A DNA stretch of 63,617 bases, filler included, from Bigelowiella natans CCMP2755 (taxonomy: Eukaryota; Protista; Cercozoa), in assembly GCA_000320545.1 (NCBI GenBank). It is 6 parts of 6 records of this genome, joined end to end, with 100 filler letters (N's around TTAATTAATTAA, not from the genome) between each part and the next. Parts side by side here need not be neighbours in the genome. Positions count along the whole stretch, not along the records: positions 1 to 19,850 come from ADNK01002877.1; 5 more parts are not named here. One strand, written 5' to 3'. Of the stretch, positions 8,285 through 19,850 are shown in pieces. The first letter of the stretch is position 1. Each line of letters begins with the position of its first letter. The position numbers were made by a program, and so were the translations under genes. The notes under the pieces were generated by a model that had not been told where the DNA came from, did no database searches, and saw nothing but the letters and a program-made list of their open reading frames with translations.

Positions 8285-10620
8285 TTAGGTCCGAATTGAT
8301 CTACATGCTAGGTGCACAAATGTTCTCCGAAAAACACTTTCTTTCACAATGGTGACGTTATGTTTTTGAGCAAATCTTATTTTGCGCGTTTCGTGCACGT
8401 TGAAGTTCTTGATGATCAAGAGGGAAGTGGATTTGTGCAAATCATTTTGAAATGTGCAACCTGATTCCGCTGCCATCATCCTCAGATTGCGTCTCTGGGT
8501 CTTCGAGAGACCTGACGAGCACACCACTGCACCTTGTCGAAAGATAATTTGTTCCACAGATCGCGGATCTTTTAGAGTTCTCACGCCCCTTTTCCGAAGA
8601 CAGTATCGCCTCTTGGTATCACGCCTCATCTCCCTTGAAACATGATTTTTTCGCTTCCTCGGAAAATATTCATTGTGAAGTCTGTCAAGTTTTTGGAGGT
8701 ATCTCTGTAGGGAATTTACTACAGTGCTGGCAACTTTCTCCCCATTTTCGTTCATCAAACGTCTGGTCTGCTTTTCTAAAAGTTTCATTATCATTTCGTT
8801 TTTCTCAATCTTGTCCATTAAAGCACCAAACTTCTCCTTAAAACAAATAATCAAAACCATTTTAGGGCTTAGTACATAACTAAATAACGAAATTGTACGT
8901 TGAATGCTGTTGCCGTGTTTCCCATCTTTGTCATCAACATTTCTCGGTTCTCGCTTTCTTTTGATATTTCACACATCATTCTAGCTTTATTATCAGAAGA
9001 TTCTTTCCTGGCTTCTTTTCTCCATGAACTAAGCAAAGGCATGATTTTGGCCATAATTTCAGACACGATGTTTCGTCTCAATGCAGCGGTTGTATCTCTT
9101 TGTCTTCGAATTTCTAGTCGAGTGGCCTTCATTAACTCAGAAGTAATTCTTTGCATTTCCCCCTCAAAATTAGATCTTTCCTTACCTTTCAAGTTATTGA
9201 TAATTATGGAAAAACTTTCTGCAGAATGTAAAACAAAATTAAAAATTATTTAACCTAATAAAACACTATCATCCATTATTAGCTCCATATCAATATCCCT
9301 GGTTTTTGAAATAAATTTTGTTGAGACGATCCCATCTATATTTCAATGAGTAAGGCACATTTAAGTTGTACCGTTCTTTTTGAGATTGGTATTCCACATC
9401 GTGAGAATTGACACTCATGTCCAATGTACTATCACTCAGATAGGTTGGGAGAGCCTTGACTTCTTTTATTGGAGTCTTGCATTTAATCCTAGTAATTGGA
9501 TCATACTGATGCCCATCACTTGAATTGCTATCTTTCTGATCTAATATCTCGCTTTTTACTCTTTCTACTTCAGATCCTAACAGATTTTTATTGGCAAGAT
9601 GAGACTTCGAAGACACCTTAAGCATACAAGGAGGTCCATGTTGAACATTCTGAGGGTTCATCTGATAGGTGCCGACGCAAGACCGTAACTTTGATGATGC
9701 AATTGGATTGTCTTCAGAAGTTATACATCCTTGATCGTGTATACTTTTCGATTCGTTTTGTGATTGCTGCGAAATTTCAACACTAGATCTAGGCCCAAAG
9801 ATTGCTTGAGTGCACTTCCATGTTTCGCCTTTCAACAGAGGAATAGATATGTTCTCCGATAAAGGATCGATTTCCTTTTTATTCAGATCGTGGGTTATCT
9901 CATGTCCAGCTATTTTTTCGCGATTGATCTTTGATGGGGTTTTCGATGTGTGGTTATTTGTAGCTTTTAGCACAACACAACATTTATTATCGGTTCTAAT
10001 TTCAGCCTGTAGTTTTTCTTCATGAGCACCATCCAATACTTCATTGCTATGTAAACAGAGACTCTGTGCAGCTTCCATAACAGCATTTATTTCAAGATCG
10101 AAAGCCTGCCTCTCAGGGATAGTAGCAATCTTTTCGTTTGCACGAGAAACTGTTGCATTTTGAGAACTTGGAAATGAATACTCTTCGCTTAAATCTATTT
10201 TGTTAGTTGAATTCACCGAGTTTCTAGTTTCTTCATTAAAATTTCGAGACAGTTTGGCTCGTTTCCTACCAGACAACATCATAAACACAAAGTATGTAGT
10301 AACAATTCATAGCCTTATCAAATAAAGATGCGTTTAAGTTCATTTTTGAAATCGCGCTCCTTGCTTAGTTTTGTGCTGGAACGACTCAACGCAATTCTCT
10401 AGTGAATCTAAAATGTTCATCAAATGCACTAGTTGCTCAATAAGCAATACCTTCTAGACCTAAGACGTCTTTCATCAAGCTTTCGATCCCTAATGTCTTC
10501 TGGTGTTTGGGGATCTGCAGATTGAAAAACTCGAGGCATGTTTGATGCAGCTTGGAGGGAGAAGTATTCAATGATGGATTTAGACGAAGTCAACGTAAGC
10601 GCTTCCTTGCTAACTGTTCC
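8285..10620 (-). CDS. C-terminal BRCT-domain protein with disordered and coiled-coil regions, multi-exon; 5' end uncertain
   Basis: Last exon IFRQGAVVCSSGLSKTQRRNLRMMAAESGCTFQNDLHKSTSLLII..RKIRFAQKHNVTIVKESVF fits the BRCT pattern. Same-strand ORFs 8869..9192 and 9290..10288 lie upstream. Confidence 0.7.
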
Positions 10621-12769: not shown

Positions 12770-14224
12770 TCATCGCAATGCAGCCTCAAACTCTCGCAGA
12801 ACTTTACAATTTGACAAGCACACATTCCAGCAATTTGCACATGGTATGTTCTCGCAATCGCAATCGGATTCCAGGCATTCTCTGCACCTTCTGCTTTTCA
12901 CAGATCTCATGTTCGGACGGAAGTGGAATTTCATGTGGTTTTTGTACCCACCTTGGAAATGCACGCCCAAAGCACGTTCGTAGGCTTGGCGAGAAGGTGG
13001 AACCCACTTGTGTGACCTCAGTGATGAATTAGTTTTCAGCTTGAAGTGCAGGTGCCCATTTCGATAATATAAAGCTCTACCCAACTGCCAGTGATGAATT
13101 TTCGATTTTGTAACATTCTCCTTTTCAAGAACTACTACTTGATAACTGTCGGTGCCATGGACAAGTTTGTGATGACCATGGCGCATTGACTCATAGATGC
13201 CTTCTCTATCAAGCGCAATGACCTCGAAAATTCTCCCATCTGGAAATGACAAGCAAGAATTTACCACAGGAAACGCGGGTGCGTATGGCATCTCTTTTCC
13301 AGCGAATACACTCTCGTATTTTTGCCTGGAAACTTCACAGTTTCCTTGTGTGATGCTCCCTTGTGGCCAGACGTATCCATCAGCCCAACATTCTAACTCA
13401 TTTTGCGGCACCCCTTGATTCGCATATGAGAGTAGCATTGTCATATCATCGTGATCACGATAGTGATGTGCCCAGCGTGCAAGGTCTGCGATAGATTCTG
13501 TCGTAAATAGCGAGTAGATCCCATTGCAAAGTGGGTAGTAACAGCAAATAGCTACCTCTGCGTCCCCGTAACGGTCAAAAAACACAGAGGAGTCAATGTA
13601 CGTCATGAAGTCGTGGTCGATTAAGTTAAAACGTCTAGGCGGAGCAATAGTTTGGTTCGGAAACTGACCTTGGGCGAATTTATTTAGTATTAACCACCTT
13701 GAAAATGCTGTGGACCATACTGTGTCAGCCCTCCTAATTGATACTAAGGATGAACGCTCAGCTCTCATGGGACAGATGGCCTCGTTGATGATCTCTAACG
13801 GCACTTTCTGCCATGTAATTCCGGATTTTAGTGCCCACTGTCGACATTCTTCGCCCTCTTCAAGTAAAATCACTTTGCGGTTGTACTCTTTGGCCTGGAG
13901 GAGAGCAACTTTAAGAAATGTTGGGCATTTTTGTGGAAACCTTGCTATGCACGTTTTGTAGTTGTCTGGGTGCTCAGAAGGGCACACTGGGCAGTTTTTA
14001 AGGTAGATTGTAACAACGGGCACATCTTGCACATGTCGATTGACAAAGGAGAGATCGTCGTGACCTCTTTTGTTTTTTTGGGGATCACTGATGCAGTGGT
14101 AATTTCGAGTGTTCGTCCAGATCCCCATGCTCACCGACACGGCGCAGAAGGTCGCCATGATGACAAAAATGACCAGTGAACGCCGCTGCCAACCACCTTC
14201 TTTCATGTCTGCCTTGCCCCCCAT
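12770..14224 (-). CDS. Intronless type-II membrane protein, putative glycosyltransferase-like, with Cys-rich C-terminus
   Basis: 484-aa uninterrupted ORF. N-terminal anchor LVIFVIMATFCAVSVSMGIW, DxD-like LIDHDF after a hydrophobic strand, DDMTML motif, and tail CRECLESDCDCENIPCANCWNVCLSNC. Confidence 0.55.
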   Translation of the reverse strand: MGGKADMKEGGWQRRSLVIFVIMATFCAVSVSMGIWTNTRNYHCISDPQKNKRGHDDLSFVNRHVQDVPVVTIYLKNCPVCPSEHPDNYKTCIARFPQKCPTFLKVALLQAKEYNRKVILLEEGEECRQWALKSGITWQKVPLEIINEAICPMRAERSSLVSIRRADTVWSTAFSRWLILNKFAQGQFPNQTIAPPRRFNLIDHDFMTYIDSSVFFDRYGDAEVAICCYYPLCNGIYSLFTTESIADLARWAHHYRDHDDMTMLLSYANQGVPQNELECWADGYVWPQGSITQGNCEVSRQKYESVFAGKEMPYAPAFPVVNSCLSFPDGRIFEVIALDREGIYESMRHGHHKLVHGTDSYQVVVLEKENVTKSKIHHWQLGRALYYRNGHLHFKLKTNSSLRSHKWVPPSRQAYERALGVHFQGGYKNHMKFHFRPNMRSVKSRRCRECLESDCDCENIPCANCWNVCLSNCKVLREFEAALR

Positions 14225-14677: not shown

Positions 14678-15775
14678 ATGGAAGTCGAAACCCCTACTAC
14701 CAGGCGTGATGCCGAATCGAAATCTAGCCCAGAAGCAGACTCCAAGGCTCTCGAAAATGAAGGAACTCAACACCGAATTACTGAGGATTTTGTGTCGAAA
14801 TTCAACAAGGCGTTCACAGATGAAATTGCATTGAAGTTTCGAAAAACCCATGCCGACAATTGTCATCATTGGGACTTTACCTTTTTAATTTGGCATCGCA
14901 AATTCGTGAACAGCTTTTGGAAAGAAGTGGGCTTACCTCGAACATATGCAGTATTGACTGATGAGAAAGATAGAGAGCTCTATGCTTCTCTTCAGAAAAG
15001 TGTGTGGCAGGATCGAAATGGCATCTTTCGAACTTACCTTGACAGGAACAAACTGAATCAATGGGAAGAGAACGACACTCTAGCAATGCGTCGAAACATT
15101 GCTGAAGGATTTGTTTCATCTTCGTTTGCATTAGACTTAGATTTTGCTGGACCTAGAAATGGATATAACATTGGGTTCTCATCTCAGATTGAAGAATTCC
15201 ATGATATTGTTCATATGGAAACTGGTCGATGCATGAGAAGTGTGAGGACAGCCGGAGGCGACCAATGTTTTTTCATTCATCACACTTTCGTGGACTTGGT
15301 GTTCGAAGCTTGGCTCGAAAAAAACAAGCCGGATATTCCGGTTGACAAGGCATATTTTGACAGTGAGCCTGTTTTCAAAACTGAATACAAAGACTACGAT
15401 GAATTCAAAGCCCTATGGGGCGAACGGCATTTTACTAGTGACGATTACAAACATGTAAATCGGATCGTAATGTCGGTACCAGCAACAAGAACTTTACTTG
15501 TCTTTGATGAGATTCTTCATATAGAGGAGGCTCGTCGTGTTATCGTGTATCATAGAGGTGAGGAACTCGGGCGTTTTTCCATCATTACTGGAGCACCGGA
15601 AACATGTGAATCCTGTAAAACCAAGAAGCACAAAGGCCAGTTTCTTCTCAGCAAGCTGGTACCATTGACGGAGCTTTCATTTAGAATAAACTTCGAATTT
15701 TTCAGTGAATGGAGCGAGGCGAAGGAAGAATTTAAAAAAATAGGAGTTTCTGTCCCATATGTTGCTTCCTTTTAG
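14678..15775 (+). CDS. Intronless tyrosinase / type-3 copper protein
   Basis: CuA-like HADNCHHWDFTFLIWHRKFV; CuB-like EEFHDIVH...AGGDQCFFIHHTFVDLVF; C-terminal domain with CESC (CxxC). Confidence 0.85.
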   Translation: MEVETPTTRRDAESKSSPEADSKALENEGTQHRITEDFVSKFNKAFTDEIALKFRKTHADNCHHWDFTFLIWHRKFVNSFWKEVGLPRTYAVLTDEKDRELYASLQKSVWQDRNGIFRTYLDRNKLNQWEENDTLAMRRNIAEGFVSSSFALDLDFAGPRNGYNIGFSSQIEEFHDIVHMETGRCMRSVRTAGGDQCFFIHHTFVDLVFEAWLEKNKPDIPVDKAYFDSEPVFKTEYKDYDEFKALWGERHFTSDDYKHVNRIVMSVPATRTLLVFDEILHIEEARRVIVYHRGEELGRFSIITGAPETCESCKTKKHKGQFLLSKLVPLTELSFRINFEFFSEWSEAKEEFKKIGVSVPYVASF

Positions 15776-16468
15776 AGCTGTGTTAGTTTACGAACACGAT
15801 GCATGTGTGCATAAGGATGATTAAACAATGCGTGCTGTGGTGGCTTTTTGTGAACTTGAGAATCCTAAAAGCATCTTCGTGATTTCGTGGCTACATACAA
15901 TTAGTTAGGACAGTCGAGTTCACGAACACAATGATGCATTATGTGCATTCGTGCGGCGTGAGAACAGTAAACGACTTCCACCTGTATATCCTTTTTGCGA
16001 CTCACTATGCTAGTATGGCTGCATCGATGAACTAGATGATGCTCACAGGCAGCAGGGCATGACTACTAGCTAGCTAGACTAGATGGCTACAGTATTTGCA
16101 CGGCGGACGCAAATAACTATGATTAATTCTAGAATTGGCAAGTCTATTAGCATTGAGTTGACACACCAACATGCTACCATGCACAGCGGTCAAACACAGA
16201 GATGTCTCTCTCAGTATGACGTCGTTGAAGCTGCAAGATTGCCATGGGATATGTGATGCTGCTTTGCTTGCCAATGCTAGCATGTGCGCATCACATGCCA
16301 CATCTAGACATGTAGAAACCATAGATTCTCAATGCAAGTTCCAAACAAACTAGCAAAGCACAAATGGGCACATTTTCTGGGCTTCAAATGATCTTAGCGT
16401 CAACATTGTCCTGAGCTTAGACACATTTAGCGGCAGCATCTACCTAAAAGGCACTTGAGAGTCACGTT

Positions 16469-18853
16469 CTACCAATTATTCTCTTTTTCTGCGTCTTGGG
16501 ACTTCCTTCTCTGGCGATAAATGTCACGACTTCTCCGCCATGACGCACTTTCATCGCTCTTCAAATCCCTAAAAAAGCTGTCGACGACATCTGGACTTTC
16601 TTCAGCCGCGTCTCCTAGGGGATCGCTGTAAACGCCCCCTCCCCCAATCACAACGGGATCGAGTCCCTCCTTTTTGCGGTACATATTTGTGTCCCTCAGA
16701 CTGAAGGAACAGCCGCAATATTCTTGCTTGTAAAATTTTTCATCGGCGTTAATTCGATATTTGCGAATATTCATTTCTTCCGTCTGCCAGTCGCTTTCTA
16801 TGTACTTCAATCCATCGTAAGCCGCGGCCGCGCGCGCGCCTGAATCATTAACTTGATTTTGATCCTTCCAGCGACTCGTTGCGTTCGTAGTAGTGAAGTG
16901 CGTGAAGCCGTGTTGCGCCGCATAGTCCGCTGTGCGCTCAAACCGCATATCAAAGCACATCGAACAGCGGCGGCCACGCTCGGGATCATACTCCATGCCC
17001 TCTGCTCGCTTGTACCACTCATCGGCGTCGTAGTCTGCATCCACAAAGGGAATGCCTAGCTTCTCCGCGTACCTCTTGTTTTCATCTTTTCGGATCTCAT
17101 ACTCTTTCCTCGGGTGTATGTTGGGGTTGTAGAAGAAGATCGTGACGTCCAGTCCGTGCGAGTGCATCTCCTCGATCATAGCGCCGGAGCAGGGCGCGCA
17201 GCACGAATGAAGTAGCACCTTCATATCTCCACTGGCCTTGGTACTACTCCGCACTAAGTCGCTGAGAGTTTTGGTGATGGTCTCTGCTTCCCCGAGGGCC
17301 TTCTTCTCTCCCCCCTGAGAATTGAACAGGAGAGAGGCGTCTCCGTATGAGAGGAATCGGTAGGCATTCTGCAAAGCATGCTCGTAAACAGCATGGATCG
17401 GTTTTGCGCCTCCAAGGAGCGCTCCTACTAGAAGCATCAGGGTCGAATCCGGCTGGTGGAAGTTCGTGACGATAGCGTCGCAGAGCCGAAAGCGATACCC
17501 CGGAACGATGCAAATGGAGGTTTGCCCTCTGAGCTGAGAGCGCCGTTGTCTATCCATTTCATCTAATAGCTGCGCAAGAGCTTCACTGGCTGTCGGAACA
17601 TTCTCCGTCTCCAGCTGCTTCTCGATCGCGTAAGGTTCCCATTGCTCTATATGAAAGCCCTCCTCGGCGGCTTGCCCTCTCCGCCCCGCCCTTAGGATCA
17701 GCTTGACGCCCAGCCAATACAGAGATTCCAGGCACCTCGATGAAGTAGTTCCGACAGGCACAACGCTGCGGCGCGCCTCTATGCTTTTGATGATACCGAC
17801 CAGAGCTTCTCGAGACACTGAGAAACGCTCTTCGTGCATGTTGTGGTTGACGATTTTCTCAGCTCCCACAGGCCTGAAGGTGCCTGCGCTCACGTGCAGC
17901 GCGATCCTGGACTGCTGGATCCCCAGCCTCTCTATATCCGAGAGCATCGAGTCGCTGAAATGAAGCCCAGCCGTGGGCGCTGCTACGCTGCCAGCACTCT
18001 GCTCGTTCGCATACAAGGTTTGGTAGAGCGCGGTGTCCTCCGGCCTCGCGTCGCGCCCCATGTACGGCGGGAGGGGGACATGCCCGAGCCGGTCAAATAG
18101 TTGTTGCGCAGACTCCCCGACAGCAGCGGTGTTGATGAGTCGCACGGACGCCTCCACGCCCTCGCCTTCCCCCTCCTCCTCCCATCGGGAATGGACCTTC
18201 TCGACTTGCAGACGCGGGGGGCACGGCTCCCCCTCTTCTTTGCCCCCCCCACACAGGGGAAGCTCCTGCCCTTCAGCCACAACGCAGCGAAGCATGCAGC
18301 GCCAGACTTGCCCCTCACACTTAGCTGAGAGCGCAATGGCAGGGTCGTCAACTGGCGTTTCCGGGGAGAGAAACATCGCCTCGACGGGCTCCGAGCCTGT
18401 GTGAGCCCGCGCAAACAGCCTCGCAGCAAATACCTGGGACTCATTGAAAACTAGGTGCACGTCGTCTTTGGGCAGCACGCTGAGAATTTGGTCGAATCGG
18501 ATATCGACGTAGTCGTCCAGGGCCTTGCTGCGGTGGTGCGACCTGAGCAGCTTCCGTGCAGCTCTCGCTATGCTGTTTTGTGGAAGGCCTTCCTGTGGGA
18601 GAGCAACTAGTAGCTTCGATTCCCCCCTCGCTGCTGGCTCCCGAGCGATTCTATCAGCGGGTAATTCGTAGGCATAATCCTTTACAAGCACGTCCGGGGC
18701 GAAGGAATGCAGGTCATTGCTGTGGGCAGTTGAAAGAACTCTTACTAACACACTTCCAAAGACGCGTCCGGGGGTGTTCCTCTGAGAGGGGCGGCGAAAA
18801 CCAAACGATCTCAATACGCATTTGCGGTTGAATCCCCTCAGCTGTACGGACAT
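16469..18853 (-). CDS. queA-queH: QueA-QueH fusion (SAM:tRNA ribosyltransferase-isomerase + epoxyqueuosine reductase DUF208), intronless, with basic N-terminal extension
   Basis: QueA motifs: YELPADRIA, LVFNESQVFAARL, GHVPLPPY, YQTLYA, GSVAAPTAGLHF, LHVSAGTFRPV, VGTTSSRCLES, TNFHQPDSTL, YRFLSYGDASLL (ends ~17321). QueH starts at ~17224: LLHSCCAPCS, FYNPNIHP, PERGRRCSMCFDMR, SRWKD, YKQEYCGCSFS. First ATG at 18853. Confidence 0.95.
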   Translation of the reverse strand: MSVQLRGFNRKCVLRSFGFRRPSQRNTPGRVFGSVLVRVLSTAHSNDLHSFAPDVLVKDYAYELPADRIAREPAARGESKLLVALPQEGLPQNSIARAARKLLRSHHRSKALDDYVDIRFDQILSVLPKDDVHLVFNESQVFAARLFARAHTGSEPVEAMFLSPETPVDDPAIALSAKCEGQVWRCMLRCVVAEGQELPLCGGGKEEGEPCPPRLQVEKVHSRWEEEGEGEGVEASVRLINTAAVGESAQQLFDRLGHVPLPPYMGRDARPEDTALYQTLYANEQSAGSVAAPTAGLHFSDSMLSDIERLGIQQSRIALHVSAGTFRPVGAEKIVNHNMHEERFSVSREALVGIIKSIEARRSVVPVGTTSSRCLESLYWLGVKLILRAGRRGQAAEEGFHIEQWEPYAIEKQLETENVPTASEALAQLLDEMDRQRRSQLRGQTSICIVPGYRFRLCDAIVTNFHQPDSTLMLLVGALLGGAKPIHAVYEHALQNAYRFLSYGDASLLFNSQGGEKKALGEAETITKTLSDLVRSSTKASGDMKVLLHSCCAPCSGAMIEEMHSHGLDVTIFFYNPNIHPRKEYEIRKDENKRYAEKLGIPFVDADYDADEWYKRAEGMEYDPERGRRCSMCFDMRFERTADYAAQHGFTHFTTTNATSRWKDQNQVNDSGARAAAAYDGLKYIESDWQTEEMNIRKYRINADEKFYKQEYCGCSFSLRDTNMYRKKEGLDPVVIGGGGVYSDPLGDAAEESPDVVDSFFRDLKSDESASWRRSRDIYRQRRKSQDAEKENNW

Positions 18854-19138
18854 CACAGCGGTTAGACCGATCCTCCCCCCACCTCCCCGCGGTTCTTCGA
18901 CTTCGAAATCTCGGACGCATTTTTCTCGGTAATTACCGGTTTATTTCGCCTCGACATTCCTCGGAATTCCTTTCAAATTTCTTGTCGCTTAGCAAGAATT
19001 AAGGCGAATTTTCCTTCTTTTTGTCACCCAGAATTATCGGGACGAAAGAGTCAGGTCGGTGCCGAAGGCAACGAGTATCCCACTGGCCTGCCCTCCCCCC
19101 CCCCTCTCCCCTCCTAACTCGCACTGCTTGCATCAACA

Positions 19139-19791
19139 TTGCTACGTCCCCGCGGTGAGGAAAGGGAGTACAGGAGAGGAGCAGGGCTCATTCTATGGGT
19201 CCTTCCTCTCCTCTACGCAGGAACCATAGCCCTGATGAGGAGGGAGGCGACTCCCAGCGGCGACAGTGTGCGGCTGCTTGGAATGGGGGAGGGACCGAGC
19301 ACGAGGTGGAGGAGGAAAGGCGTGCAGTTGAATGAGTTCGGTGGCTGGAAACGGAATTTGGTAAGAATCAAAGGGGATGGGTTCTGTCTCTTCAGGGCAC
19401 TCGCATATCAGGTGCACCTATTCTTCGTCTGCTTACAACGAATGGTCAACAACATATTCACGTGTCCTTCGTCTGCACTGCGCTCCACTACCCGCCGCAG
19501 GAAAAGAACGATTCCGTAGCGATGGGAGGGGCATCTTCGTGTCGCACAAACGTAACCAACCAGAGCCGCAAAATGGTTGACTCCATTGCCAGCTGGGTCG
19601 AAGGAGCGTTTGCGTCAAAGCATCATCACGAGAAAAACGATGCGAAATCGTTGAAAACTAGTAGAAACGGGGGCCGGAAGAAAGCGCCCAAGAGAAATGC
19701 CTGCGTAAATGGGAACTGCACGTTCCTCATTCATTCGCCCCAGGGAAACAGCGAAAATAAGAAGCAGTAAGTTGTAAGTAGCGCTGCCAGT

Positions 19792-19844
<53 letters not shown>

Positions 19845-19850
19845 ATGGGG
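19139..19850 (+). CDS. OTU-like cysteine protease, 5' exons, truncated at contig end
   Basis: LVRIKGDGFCLFRALAYQV matches the OTU catalytic GDGxCLFRA box. Confidence 0.7.

Follow-up and report, generated by a model that had tools for sequence, protein, structure and literature searches.

A single gene for fused QueA and QueH domains

The minus strand of the window (the whole 63,617-nucleotide stretch of Bigelowiella natans DNA analysed here, filler included) carries an intronless coding sequence of 794 aa plus a TAG stop (16469 to 16471) at positions 16469 to 18853, reproducing exactly the uninterrupted ORF described in the first-pass annotation. In the ORF listing of the window, the open frame runs from 16469 to 18856, with a GTG at 18856 immediately 5′ of the ATG at 18853. 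The complete QueA motifs, linker of ~30 aa, and complete QueH motifs that the annotation had recognized were borne out by full-length Pfam matches and by the translation. The QueA domain (tRNA preQ1(34) S-adenosylmethionine ribosyltransferase-isomerase; residues 57 to 509, positions 17327 to 18685) covers model positions 1 to 322 of 322 of PF02547 (E = 1.7e-80; 271 bits versus a cut-off of 25), and the QueH domain (by family a cobalamin-independent epoxyqueuosine reductase; residues 546 to 720, positions 16694 to 17218) covers positions 1 to 174 of 175 of PF02677/DUF208 (E = 1.7e-60; 204.6 bits versus 23.5). Domain matches of this strength (E-values of 1e-60 to 1e-80) lie far beyond chance for a 2.4-kb open frame. 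A profile search of the 91.4-Mb genome returned a single QueA match and a single QueH match, both of them this gene and with the same domain coordinates.

The QueA half shares with bacterial QueA the motifs PLPPY, YQT.Y, GSVAAPTAGLHF, GTTS.R.LES, TNFH.P.S, and YRF.SYGDA. It matched the solved structures of B. subtilis QueA (1yy3; 2.5e-47) and T. maritima 1vky (3.6e-45), with blocks 251 to 378 and 434 to 509 aligned, and was modelled by AF2 with pLDDT values mostly >85. The cut-offs of the NCBIfam QueA equivalogs were missed (NF001140, 279 bits versus 324; TIGR00113, 235 versus 267), the match being broken into two to three stretches by insertions. These scores appear to reflect insertions and divergence and fit a divergent eukaryotic orthologue, whose function need not be identical. 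The inter-domain linker (residues 510 to 545, positions 17219 to 17326) is predicted to be disordered (pLDDT <50 at residues 515 to 528 and 538 to 541) and is poorly conserved, with no consensus in the fusion alignment.

The QueH half aligned with T. maritima QueH (7lc5; 8e-21) at all of CC, CxxC, and CxC, i.e., six cysteines, which show little or no variation across 24 aligned fusions. The first motif, HSCCAPC (Cys551, Cys552, and Cys555; positions 17189 to 17209), is invariant in those fusions, while CSMC (Cys630 and Cys633; 16955 to 16966) and YCGC (Cys713 and Cys715; 16709 to 16720) align to the RCERC and YCGC motifs of 7lc5. In the published structure of T. maritima QueH, the six conserved cysteines are reported to bind the Fe-S cluster and the adjacent metal. 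Past the Pfam QueH model, a C-terminal extension (residues 721 to 794, positions 16472 to 16693) carries conserved DAAEES, VVDSFF, and RRK motifs and a terminal NNW that are common to eukaryotic QueH proteins, and it was modelled as helices at residues 745 to 775 (pLDDT 74 to 90). Most bacterial QueH relatives end at about residue 203 of the 260-residue query. Compared with the bacterial enzymes (B. subtilis 1yy3, T. maritima 1vky and 7lc5), the B. natans protein thus has both domains in full length and all six QueH cysteines but differs in being a single polypeptide with a leader, in having QueA insertions at about residues 172 to 250 and 380 to 433, and in the conserved extension of about 70 aa.

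Transcription and genomic context

RNA-type contigs from three studies, of 2,531, 2,564, and 2,521 nt, lie at 16366 to 18895, 16353 to 18916, and 16379 to 18899, respectively, and define an intronless transcribed unit on the minus strand at 16353 to 18916. Each run gave one colinear contig with no mismatch, gap, or joint that covers both domains and the UTRs. The DNA contig of run X1 is also colinear with the window and unbroken over 15800 to 19783, and the stretch was present in 20 runs from 13 studies.

On the plus strand, a divergent neighbour gene encoding an OTU-like Cys-protease motif (GDGFCLFRA) occupies positions 19075 to 19769. Its 89-nt GT..AG intron (19409 to 19497) was spliced out in three RNA-type assemblies, with the joint 19408->19498 seen in runs X15, X17, and X19, and was retained in the DNA assembly of run X1, where the joint is missing. 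As a control, this identifies the contig as eukaryotic and the three runs as RNA; it also bears out the first-pass remark that the contig carries a gene with a spliceosomal intron. The ends of the RNA contigs leave about 160 bp (18917 to 19074) between the 5′ ends of the two divergent transcripts, likely a shared promoter region. An out-of-frame upstream ATG is found at 18918 to 18920. Overall, the data identify the QueA-QueH gene as a genuine, expressed, nuclear eukaryotic gene.

The fusion in other eukaryotes

The fusion is not peculiar to this lineage: QueA-QueH fusions were also found in Diacronema lutheri, Pelagomonas calceolata, Cymbomonas tetramitiformis (KAK3284650.1), and Stephanoeca diplocostata (EukProt EP00041), with many more among environmental or metagenomic eukaryotic sequences. 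They come from five or more major groups of eukaryotes, one of them from a plastid-less choanoflagellate (in a transcriptome), and share with the B. natans protein the domain order, leader, linker, and C-terminal extension at 44 to 59% full-length identity. In the public databases these proteins stand under automatic names only, and the B. natans protein is missing as a full-length entry from a set of 5.8 billion protein clusters.

The abstract of the 2017 study by Zallot and colleagues that defined QueH reportedly credits gene fusions in the prediction for DUF208, and QueA-DUF208 fusions may already be mentioned there. That paper (Zallot et al. 2017) lies outside our full-text literature search, which found no paper on a eukaryotic QueA-QueH fusion; neither DUF208 nor QueA is mentioned by Henry et al. 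(2016) in their work on gene fusions.

Bacterial relatives and origin of the fusion

The QueH half is closest to the QueH proteins of Rickettsiales and other alphaproteobacteria (58 to 63% identity, as high as among the eukaryotic proteins). Named relatives of the QueA half are few, namely Galdieria (37%), a Bacteroidetes MAG (39%), and the bacterial QueA encoded beside alphaproteobacterial queH (28 to 36%). None of the 80 closest bacterial QueH homologues is fused to QueA; in four of these loci (Micavibrio and Rickettsiales MAGs) queA is directly upstream of queH on the same strand, as a separate gene. The two domains were therefore most likely joined within eukaryotes. Bacteria and eukaryotes are separated by a long branch with full support in the QueH tree, which is unrooted, with a single outgroup (P0058) on a branch of length 10, and so gives no direction of transfer between alphaproteobacteria and eukaryotes. 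Acquisition from bacteria, as proposed in the first-pass annotation for the bifunctional enzyme, is thus plausible for the QueH half, given its alphaproteobacterial affinity.

The outgroup P0058 is itself a fusion, on a compact, prokaryote-like metagenome contig with bacterial-type neighbours. It differs from the B. natans protein in its opposite domain order (QueH-QueA), the lack of a leader, and its great distance in the tree. The presence of both enzymes in one chain provides independent support for their functional link.

Pathway partners in the genome

The same genome encodes a bacterial-like (chlamydial-type) TGT, which could supply the substrate. This 484-aa ORF (L002) is 100% identical to EukProt 'jgi/Bigna1/133900', in keeping with the B. 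natans origin of the DNA; it scores 381 bits to TIGR00430 and has an N-terminal extension of about 100 aa, a CxCxxC zinc site (CDCFTC), and a GGLAVGE motif remodelled to GGSLGRD. The residue corresponding to Z. mobilis Cys158 is Leu, a signature of bacterial-like TGT (PMC12301720). Its closest named relatives are from Cyanidium, diatoms, Pyramimonas, and Chlamydiales/Babeliales MAGs. The genome also encodes a QTRT1-type enzyme that matches mammalian QTRT1 with 449 bits; Val occupies its Cys158 position, and the motif reads GGLAGGE. For Q_salvage (the QNG1 family), the genome search gave clear matches at two loci and a weak one at a third. Another TGT-like locus, the third, on contig C393, is probably QTRT2; one exon gave weak, non-discriminating matches, and the other range contained stops.

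Six-frame searches of the 3,736-contig, intron-rich assembly, which do not prove absence, gave no match for QueF or QueG. There was likewise no PF02592 match for the YhhQ/COG1738 preQ0/preQ1 transporter in the genome, nor was any preQ1 transporter found. The only QueC match was a 63-aa generic PP-loop that scored equally with NAD synthase. De novo queuosine synthesis, as judged by QueC and QueF, was thus not detected, and with no detectable QueC, QueF, or YhhQ any input must be a salvaged precursor. This agrees with one part of the first-pass proposal, completion of queuosine from preQ1; the other part, use of an earlier precursor, is unlikely because no QueF was found.

The N-terminal leader

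The N-terminal leader (residues 1 to 46, positions 18716 to 18853) contains nine Arg/Lys and no Asp/Glu, is rich in Ser/Thr, and is disordered in the AF2 model (residues 1 to 44). It includes a possible R-3 cleavage motif (RVL↓S, residues 38 to 41). By composition, no signal-peptide-like hydrophobic core lies close to the N terminus; residues 31 to 40 are moderately hydrophobic (Kyte-Doolittle 1.9 over 11 residues). The first internal Met does not occur before residue 160. In the orthologues, Arg-rich, acid-poor leaders of 22 to 35 aa immediately precede the QueA core. Plastid import in Pelagomonas, a complex-plastid alga, would require a signal peptide; its orthologue has a short, Arg-rich, acid-poor leader without one.

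From its composition, we infer that the leader is a mitochondrial-type presequence. It suggests that the fusion acts in an organelle, most likely the mitochondrion, rather than altering cytosolic queuine salvage, which the genome also retains. The nuclear and mitochondrial genomes of B. natans have both been sequenced. The mitochondrial genome is missing from the present assembly (no COX1 match), and the tRNA substrates are therefore known from the literature only: PMC4757882 gives trnD(gtc), trnH(gtg), trnN(gtt), and trnY(gta) among the genes of the B. natans mtDNA.

Proposed pathway and alternative explanations

The best reading of these data, which we consider probable, is a mitochondrial fused enzyme that converts salvaged preQ1, once in tRNA, to queuosine, while cytosolic queuine salvage is kept. 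The nuclear gene would give rise to a protein composed of leader, QueA, flexible linker, and QueH that is imported into mitochondria. There, the QueA domain would use S-adenosylmethionine to convert preQ1-tRNA to epoxyqueuosine-tRNA, and the tethered QueH, an Fe-S/metal enzyme with no need for cobalamin, would reduce this to queuosine-tRNA; in the cytosol, ordinary queuine salvage would proceed via QTRT1 and QNG1. The compartment, preQ1 as the inserted base, and the enzyme activity are predictions. Fusion would presumably provide equal amounts of both activities and allow the epoxide intermediate to be handed over on one tRNA.

If the bacterial-like TGT instead inserted queuine directly, QueA-QueH would be left without a substrate, or would be an occasional back-up for when preQ1 is available or a gene being lost. 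The pocket of the B. natans TGT, with Leu at the Cys158 position and GGSLGRD for GGLAVGE, speaks for this reading. Bacterial-like TGTs have pocket changes resembling those found in the enzyme from Chlamydia trachomatis, for which direct insertion of queuine is described (PMC12301720, citing Yuan 2019). In the view of the same paper, any bacterial-like TGT may be able to use queuine, and some green algae keep a bacterial-like TGT without QueA or QueG; YhhQ was not found in B. natans. However, the fusion is intact, retains every metal ligand, is transcribed in three independent studies, and is conserved over its full length across the eukaryotic groups mentioned above. Such a pattern implies purifying selection on both activities, which is sensible only if preQ1-tRNA and oQ-tRNA are formed, and we consider queuine insertion with a dispensable QueA-QueH unlikely.

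More doubtful still is a plastid or periplastidial location, or dual targeting, of the same enzyme, with plastid-encoded GUN tRNAs as its substrates. The B. natans plastid does have its own tRNAs, algae are numerous among the fusion-bearing taxa, and the leader is long (about 46 to 59 aa) as well as moderately hydrophobic at the residues indicated above. Yet import into the B. natans plastid or periplastid requires a signal peptide followed by a transit peptide (PMC3542566), whereas the sole hydrophobic stretch of the leader comes after eight basic residues and is broken by Arg. The Pelagomonas orthologues lack signal peptides too, the fusion occurs in the transcriptome of a choanoflagellate with no plastid at all, and the related Chloropicon proteins are predicted to be mitochondrial (PMC12301720).

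A cytosolic enzyme finishing queuosine on nuclear-encoded tRNAs, provided with preQ1 by a promiscuous eukaryotic TGT, is very improbable. Although promiscuity for nucleobases has been reported for the human eukaryotic TGT (work cited in PMC12301720), B. natans QTRT1 has a queuine-type pocket (Val at the Cys158 position, GGLAGGE), and there is a dedicated bacterial-like TGT that carries an extension of its own. A cytosolic location would also leave unaccounted for a basic, acid-free leader that is conserved across the orthologues and cannot be bypassed by an alternative downstream start.

Finally, bacterial contamination, or an assembly chimera of two bacterial genes and a eukaryotic contig, might be suspected from domains that are typically bacterial, a gene with no introns, and a GC3 of 0.63 against 0.32 to 0.48 in the neighbours, but it is rejected as having a negligible probability, since the DNA and RNA contigs are colinear with no chimeric join to bacterial DNA, a spliced eukaryotic gene begins 160 bp upstream, the closest bacterial QueH genes are unfused, and the nearest relatives are eukaryotic fusions with leaders.

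Implications

In the textbook view, queuosine is made by bacteria only, and eukaryotes import the ready-made base. Many marine algae need external B12, a dependence that may explain the use of a B12-free reductase. A 2025 paper broke the textbook rule for two algal groups, which have QueA and the B12-dependent QueG (PMC12301720). QueA-QueH would represent a second, B12-independent solution that looks more widespread, being expressed in a model alga and present in a choanoflagellate, a relative of animals. The near-Rickettsiales affinity of its QueH half also bears on the question of which genes organelles or symbionts have given to their hosts.

We tentatively propose, with the odds slightly against so broad a statement, that many unrelated eukaryotes (Rhizaria, haptophytes, pelagophytes, prasinophytes, and a choanoflagellate) finish queuosine in their mitochondria from preQ1 scavenged from bacteria, by means of a fused QueA-QueH whose reductase half is of alphaproteobacterial descent, possibly from the mitochondrial ancestor or a Rickettsiales-like symbiont. 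If true, this would overturn the rule of queuine-only salvage in eukaryotes and link decoding in organelles with bacterial prey or partners and with vitamin B12 independence. The fusion would then be a natural device for passing an epoxide intermediate between active sites.

Comparison with the predicted mitochondrial pathway of Chloropicon and Galdieria

In Chloropicon and Galdieria, a bacterial-like TGT, QueA, and QueG, with or without YhhQ, are predicted to be mitochondrial (PMC12301720, 2025). That report supersedes the view, repeated in the first-pass annotation, that eukaryotes lack the QueA and reductase steps. Common to these algae and B. natans are nuclear genes for the late bacterial steps of queuosine synthesis, a chlamydial-type TGT with an N-terminal extension in the same genome, cytosolic QTRT1/QNG1 salvage alongside, and no detected genes for preQ1 synthesis. 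The QueA of Chloropicon and Galdieria has a predicted mitochondrial-type leader, and in B. natans and its orthologues the composition of the leaders is consistent with a mitochondrial presequence. YhhQ was not detected in the B. natans genome; two Chloropicon roscoffensis strains lack it as well (PMC12301720), and hence it does not strictly define the pathway. The systems differ in the host, a rhizarian as opposed to a green or red alga, and in the reductase, which in Chloropicon and Galdieria is QueG and in B. natans is QueH, a cobalamin-independent enzyme of unrelated fold that is fused to QueA. The B. natans gene is not a new kind of system; it most likely represents a fused, vitamin B12-independent version of this pathway, whose first description, in 2025, came from green algae.

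The QueA-QueH fusion gene

The B. natans assembly comprises 91.4 Mb in 3,736 contigs, one of which, C860 (19,850 bp), contains a long minus-strand frame from 16469 to 18856. A GTG at 18856 is directly followed by an ATG at 18853, after which the next methionine does not occur before residue 160. From this ATG to the TAG stop (16469 to 16471) the frame encodes a 794-aa protein. On this strand, Pfam assigned QueA (PF02547) to residues 57 to 509, with the whole model covered (E 1.7e-80), and QueH (PF02677) to residues 546 to 720 (model positions 1 to 174 of 175, E 1.7e-60). The 794-aa ORF with QueA, linker, and QueH described in the first-pass annotation is fully confirmed, and its QueH motifs HSCCAPC, CSMC, and YCGC are in the sequence where they had been placed. 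All six QueH cysteines have aligned counterparts in Thermotoga maritima QueH (7lc5), and the QueA half aligns to the solved structures 1yy3 and 1vky. The score against the NCBIfam QueA equivalogs falls under the strict cutoff (279 versus 324 bits) because two insertions break up the match. An AlphaFold2 model built from 24 fusion proteins (mean pLDDT, 83) predicted confident domains at residues 50 to 512 and 545 to 775, with disorder at the N terminus (residues 1 to 44) and in the linker (residues 515 to 541). Searching the whole genome with the PF02547 and PF02677 profiles revealed no second locus, each matching the fusion only.

The QueH half ends in an extension of about 70 aa (residues 721 to 794, positions 16472 to 16693) common to eukaryotic QueH proteins, fused or unfused, with conserved DAAEES, VVDSFF, and RRK motifs, a terminal NNW, and three helices in the model. 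A few Rickettsiales proteins (loci L027 and L089) reach equally far into this extension.

Transcription and genomic context

Twenty sequencing runs of a single organism, spread over 13 studies, contain the stretch carrying the fusion, and the contigs of four of these runs were mapped onto positions 15800 to 19850. One DNA contig spans 15800 to 19783 unbroken. Three transcriptome-sized runs, each from a different study, yielded one stand-alone contig apiece of 2,521 to 2,564 nt, lying within 16353 to 18916 and consisting of the ORF, a 5′ leader of about 45 to 65 nt, and a 3′ trailer of 90 to 115 nt; all three are fully colinear with the genome, with no mismatches, gaps, or joints. A second contig in the same runs (19075 to 19769) has 89 nt (19409 to 19497, GT..AG) spliced out that are kept in the DNA run. 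This demonstrates that the three runs are RNA and that a gene with a spliceosomal intron, as had been claimed for this contig, adjoins the fusion. About 160 bp separate the 5′ end of the fusion transcript from the start of this neighbor, which is divergent and has an OTU-like GDGFCLFRA motif. Both domains are transcribed as a single unit. A chimeric join or bacterial contamination is excluded by the unbroken DNA contig, the colinear RNA contigs, and the spliced neighbor about 160 bp away.

An out-of-frame upstream ATG (18918 to 18920, minus strand) lies 67 nt ahead of the start codon, just beyond the end of the longest RNA contig (18916), and may or may not be within the mRNA. Other long ORFs on the contig encode a 365-aa tyrosinase-domain protein (14678 to 15775, plus strand), a 191-aa BRCT-domain product (8285 to 8860, minus), and products of 484 aa (12770 to 14224, minus) and 332 aa (9290 to 10288, minus) without Pfam matches.

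The full-length fusion protein was absent from the 5.8 billion protein clusters searched, among which there were just short fragments matching this contig. The same organism's bacterial-like tRNA-guanine transglycosylase (BL-TGT) is present there as a JGI Bigna1 model, suggesting that annotation of the genome overlooked or truncated the fusion gene.

Distribution and origin of the fusion

Both domains occur in the same order in at least 35 clusters (90% identity), with fusions in the haptophyte Diacronema lutheri, the pelagophyte Pelagomonas calceolata, the green alga Cymbomonas tetramitiformis (KAK3284650.1, automatically named "epoxyqueuosine reductase"), and the transcriptome of the choanoflagellate Stephanoeca diplocostata. 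QueH without a QueA domain is likewise common in eukaryotes (Tetraselmis, Heterosigma, Skeletonema, and many MMETSP transcripts). The closest fusion relative, P0001 (58% identity), is encoded on a 378-kb soil-metagenome contig. Its neighbors there are an RluA-type pseudouridine synthase, SelU (tRNA 2-selenouridine synthase), and an MTPAP-like nucleotidyltransferase, and the RNA-modification genes around it are tightly packed and apparently intronless.

The eukaryotic QueH alignment was scanned against one bacterial or archaeal genome per species (185,579 species), seeded by two conserved peptides, a possible source of bias. Rickettsiales, other alphaproteobacteria such as Bombella, and Micavibrio (listed as Bdellovibrionota in the tree's NCBI labels) accounted for nearly all of the 80 best loci. 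Their QueH proteins were 58 to 63% identical, on par with eukaryotic QueH proteins among themselves. In an unrooted maximum-likelihood tree, a fully supported long branch separated these 80 and one bacterial-type protein from all eukaryotic sequences, among which fused and unfused QueH were intermixed, some of the "unfused" ones probably being fragments. Together, the best loci and the tree point to a single alphaproteobacterium-like affinity of the QueH half, which would fit a mitochondrial or Rickettsiales-like source. None of the 80 bacterial QueH loci showed a QueA fusion; in 4 of them, queA is the gene immediately upstream, in the same orientation. The fusion probably arose within eukaryotes, perhaps from such a queA-queH gene pair.

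A reverse-order QueH-QueA fusion (P0058, L095:512-2320) on a compact prokaryote-like contig, and five-domain proteins with FolD, pterin-4a dehydratase, QueA, and QueH, show that these enzymes were joined on more than one occasion. The gene for P0058 adjoins an MFS nucleoside:H+ symporter-type gene that could encode a queuosine-precursor transporter. The larger fusions (P0361, P0005, and P0034 to P0036; 974 to 1398 aa) have the arrangement (NMT1/THI5-like)-FolD-pterin-4a-carbinolamine dehydratase-QueA, with or without QueH, and some are complete MMETSP transcripts.

Other queuosine genes

Three TGT-fold loci were found in the genome. L001 encodes an intronless QTRT1-type enzyme of 504 aa (449 bits against mammalian QTRT1) with Val at the position of Zymomonas mobilis Cys158 and GGLAGGE. 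L002 encodes an intronless 484-aa protein whose N terminus is extended by about 100 aa; its CDCFTC zinc site is intact, Leu occupies the Cys158 position, and GGSLGRD replaces the bacterial GGLAVGE. The third is a weak, intron-split match. The L002 product is 100% identical to EukProt entry "jgi/Bigna1/133900," which identifies the genome as that of B. natans, a chlorarachniophyte (Rhizaria) bearing a secondary green plastid. Its closest named relatives are from Cyanidium, diatoms, Pyramimonas, and Chlamydiales/Babeliales MAGs. The L002 product belongs to the "BL-TGT" class; PMC12301720 credits Manna and Harman (2016) with tracing this class to Chlamydiae. A bacterial-type TGT, one of the genes the first-pass annotation had proposed to look for, is present. 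QNG1/Q_salvage gave two clear loci and a third weak match.

L001 (L001:1108-2622, contig C556) is without the three zinc-binding cysteines, the human QTRT1 site ECPCPTC reading TTS..VG ahead of the conserved SRGFLH, and its N terminus is lengthened by about 120 aa with a high Ser, Glu, and Lys content. GC3 is 0.63 in the fusion gene (16472 to 18853) and 0.69 in the BL-TGT gene (L002:1510-2964), both intronless; it is much lower in the other ORFs checked (0.32 to 0.48; QTRT1, 0.47). The high values may stem from codon bias or from a foreign history common to both genes.

Provisionally, a six-frame search of this fragmented, intron-rich assembly detected no QueF, no QueG, and no preQ0/preQ1 transporter YhhQ; the sole "QueC" match was a generic PP-loop protein scoring equally well against NAD synthase. 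On this evidence, B. natans would be unable to make preQ1 itself; it has an enzyme that could insert preQ1 into tRNA and two enzymes that would complete the synthesis.

Predicted compartment and function

Residues 1 to 46 of the fusion contain nine Arg/Lys and no Asp/Glu, are Ser/Thr-rich, and include a possible R-3 cleavage motif (RVL|S, residues 38 to 41); the disorder at this end of the AlphaFold2 model spans precisely residues 1 to 44. Its only hydrophobic stretch (residues 31 to 40) has eight basic residues ahead and an Arg inside, unlike a signal peptide, and targeting to the plastid or periplastid compartment in B. natans requires a signal peptide ahead of a transit peptide (PMC3542566). 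Complete orthologues have Arg-rich, acid-poor leaders of 22 to 35 aa abutting the conserved QueA start. The Pelagomonas leader is among these, and plastid import there would need a signal peptide. Stephanoeca, the source of one fusion, is plastid-less, with transcriptome contamination a possibility. The mitochondrial genome, absent from this 3,736-contig assembly, encodes all four GUN tRNAs in B. natans (PMC4757882), and BL-TGT, QueA, and QueG of Chloropicon and Galdieria are predicted to be mitochondrion targeted (PMC12301720). From the leader type, the lack of a signal peptide, the orthologue leaders, the tRNAs, and this precedent, we infer that mitochondria are the most likely site of action.

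There, BL-TGT would insert salvaged preQ1 at position 34 of mitochondrial tRNA-Asp, -Asn, -His, and -Tyr; the QueA domain would transfer and isomerize the ribosyl moiety of SAM, giving epoxyqueuosine, and the tethered QueH domain, needing no cobalamin, would reduce the epoxide to queuosine. The flexible 30-aa linker would hold both active sites near one anticodon loop at a fixed 1:1 ratio. QueH in place of QueG would remove the B12 requirement, the reason also proposed for the use of QueH by Rickettsia (PMC5615194). The main uncertainty is whether BL-TGT inserts queuine instead of preQ1, as the Chlamydia trachomatis enzyme is described as doing in PMC12301720. We take an intact, conserved, and expressed QueA-QueH as indirect evidence for preQ1-tRNA formation. 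On balance we favor the view that the fusion acts in mitochondria as a bifunctional enzyme that completes queuosine from salvaged preQ1 without B12.

Comparison with known pathways

The fusion is real, expressed, widespread, and testable but introduces no new principle, and automatically named entries for it already exist in public databases. Our literature search, which did not extend to the paper defining QueH, found no paper on eukaryotic QueH or a QueA-QueH fusion. The abstract of that defining study, by Zallot et al. in 2017, reportedly gives gene fusions as evidence. The first-pass interpretation is supported in part. It holds as regards a real, expressed eukaryotic gene; its premise, the absence of these steps from eukaryotes, was the prevailing view only until July 2025, when it was overtaken by "a previously undescribed eukaryotic" pathway of bacterial type, comprising QueA and QueG, in the mitochondria of Chloropicon and Galdieria (PMC12301720). 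QueH is unmentioned in that report, and the two systems differ in the reductase, which is QueG in Chloropicon and Galdieria and a fused QueH in B. natans.
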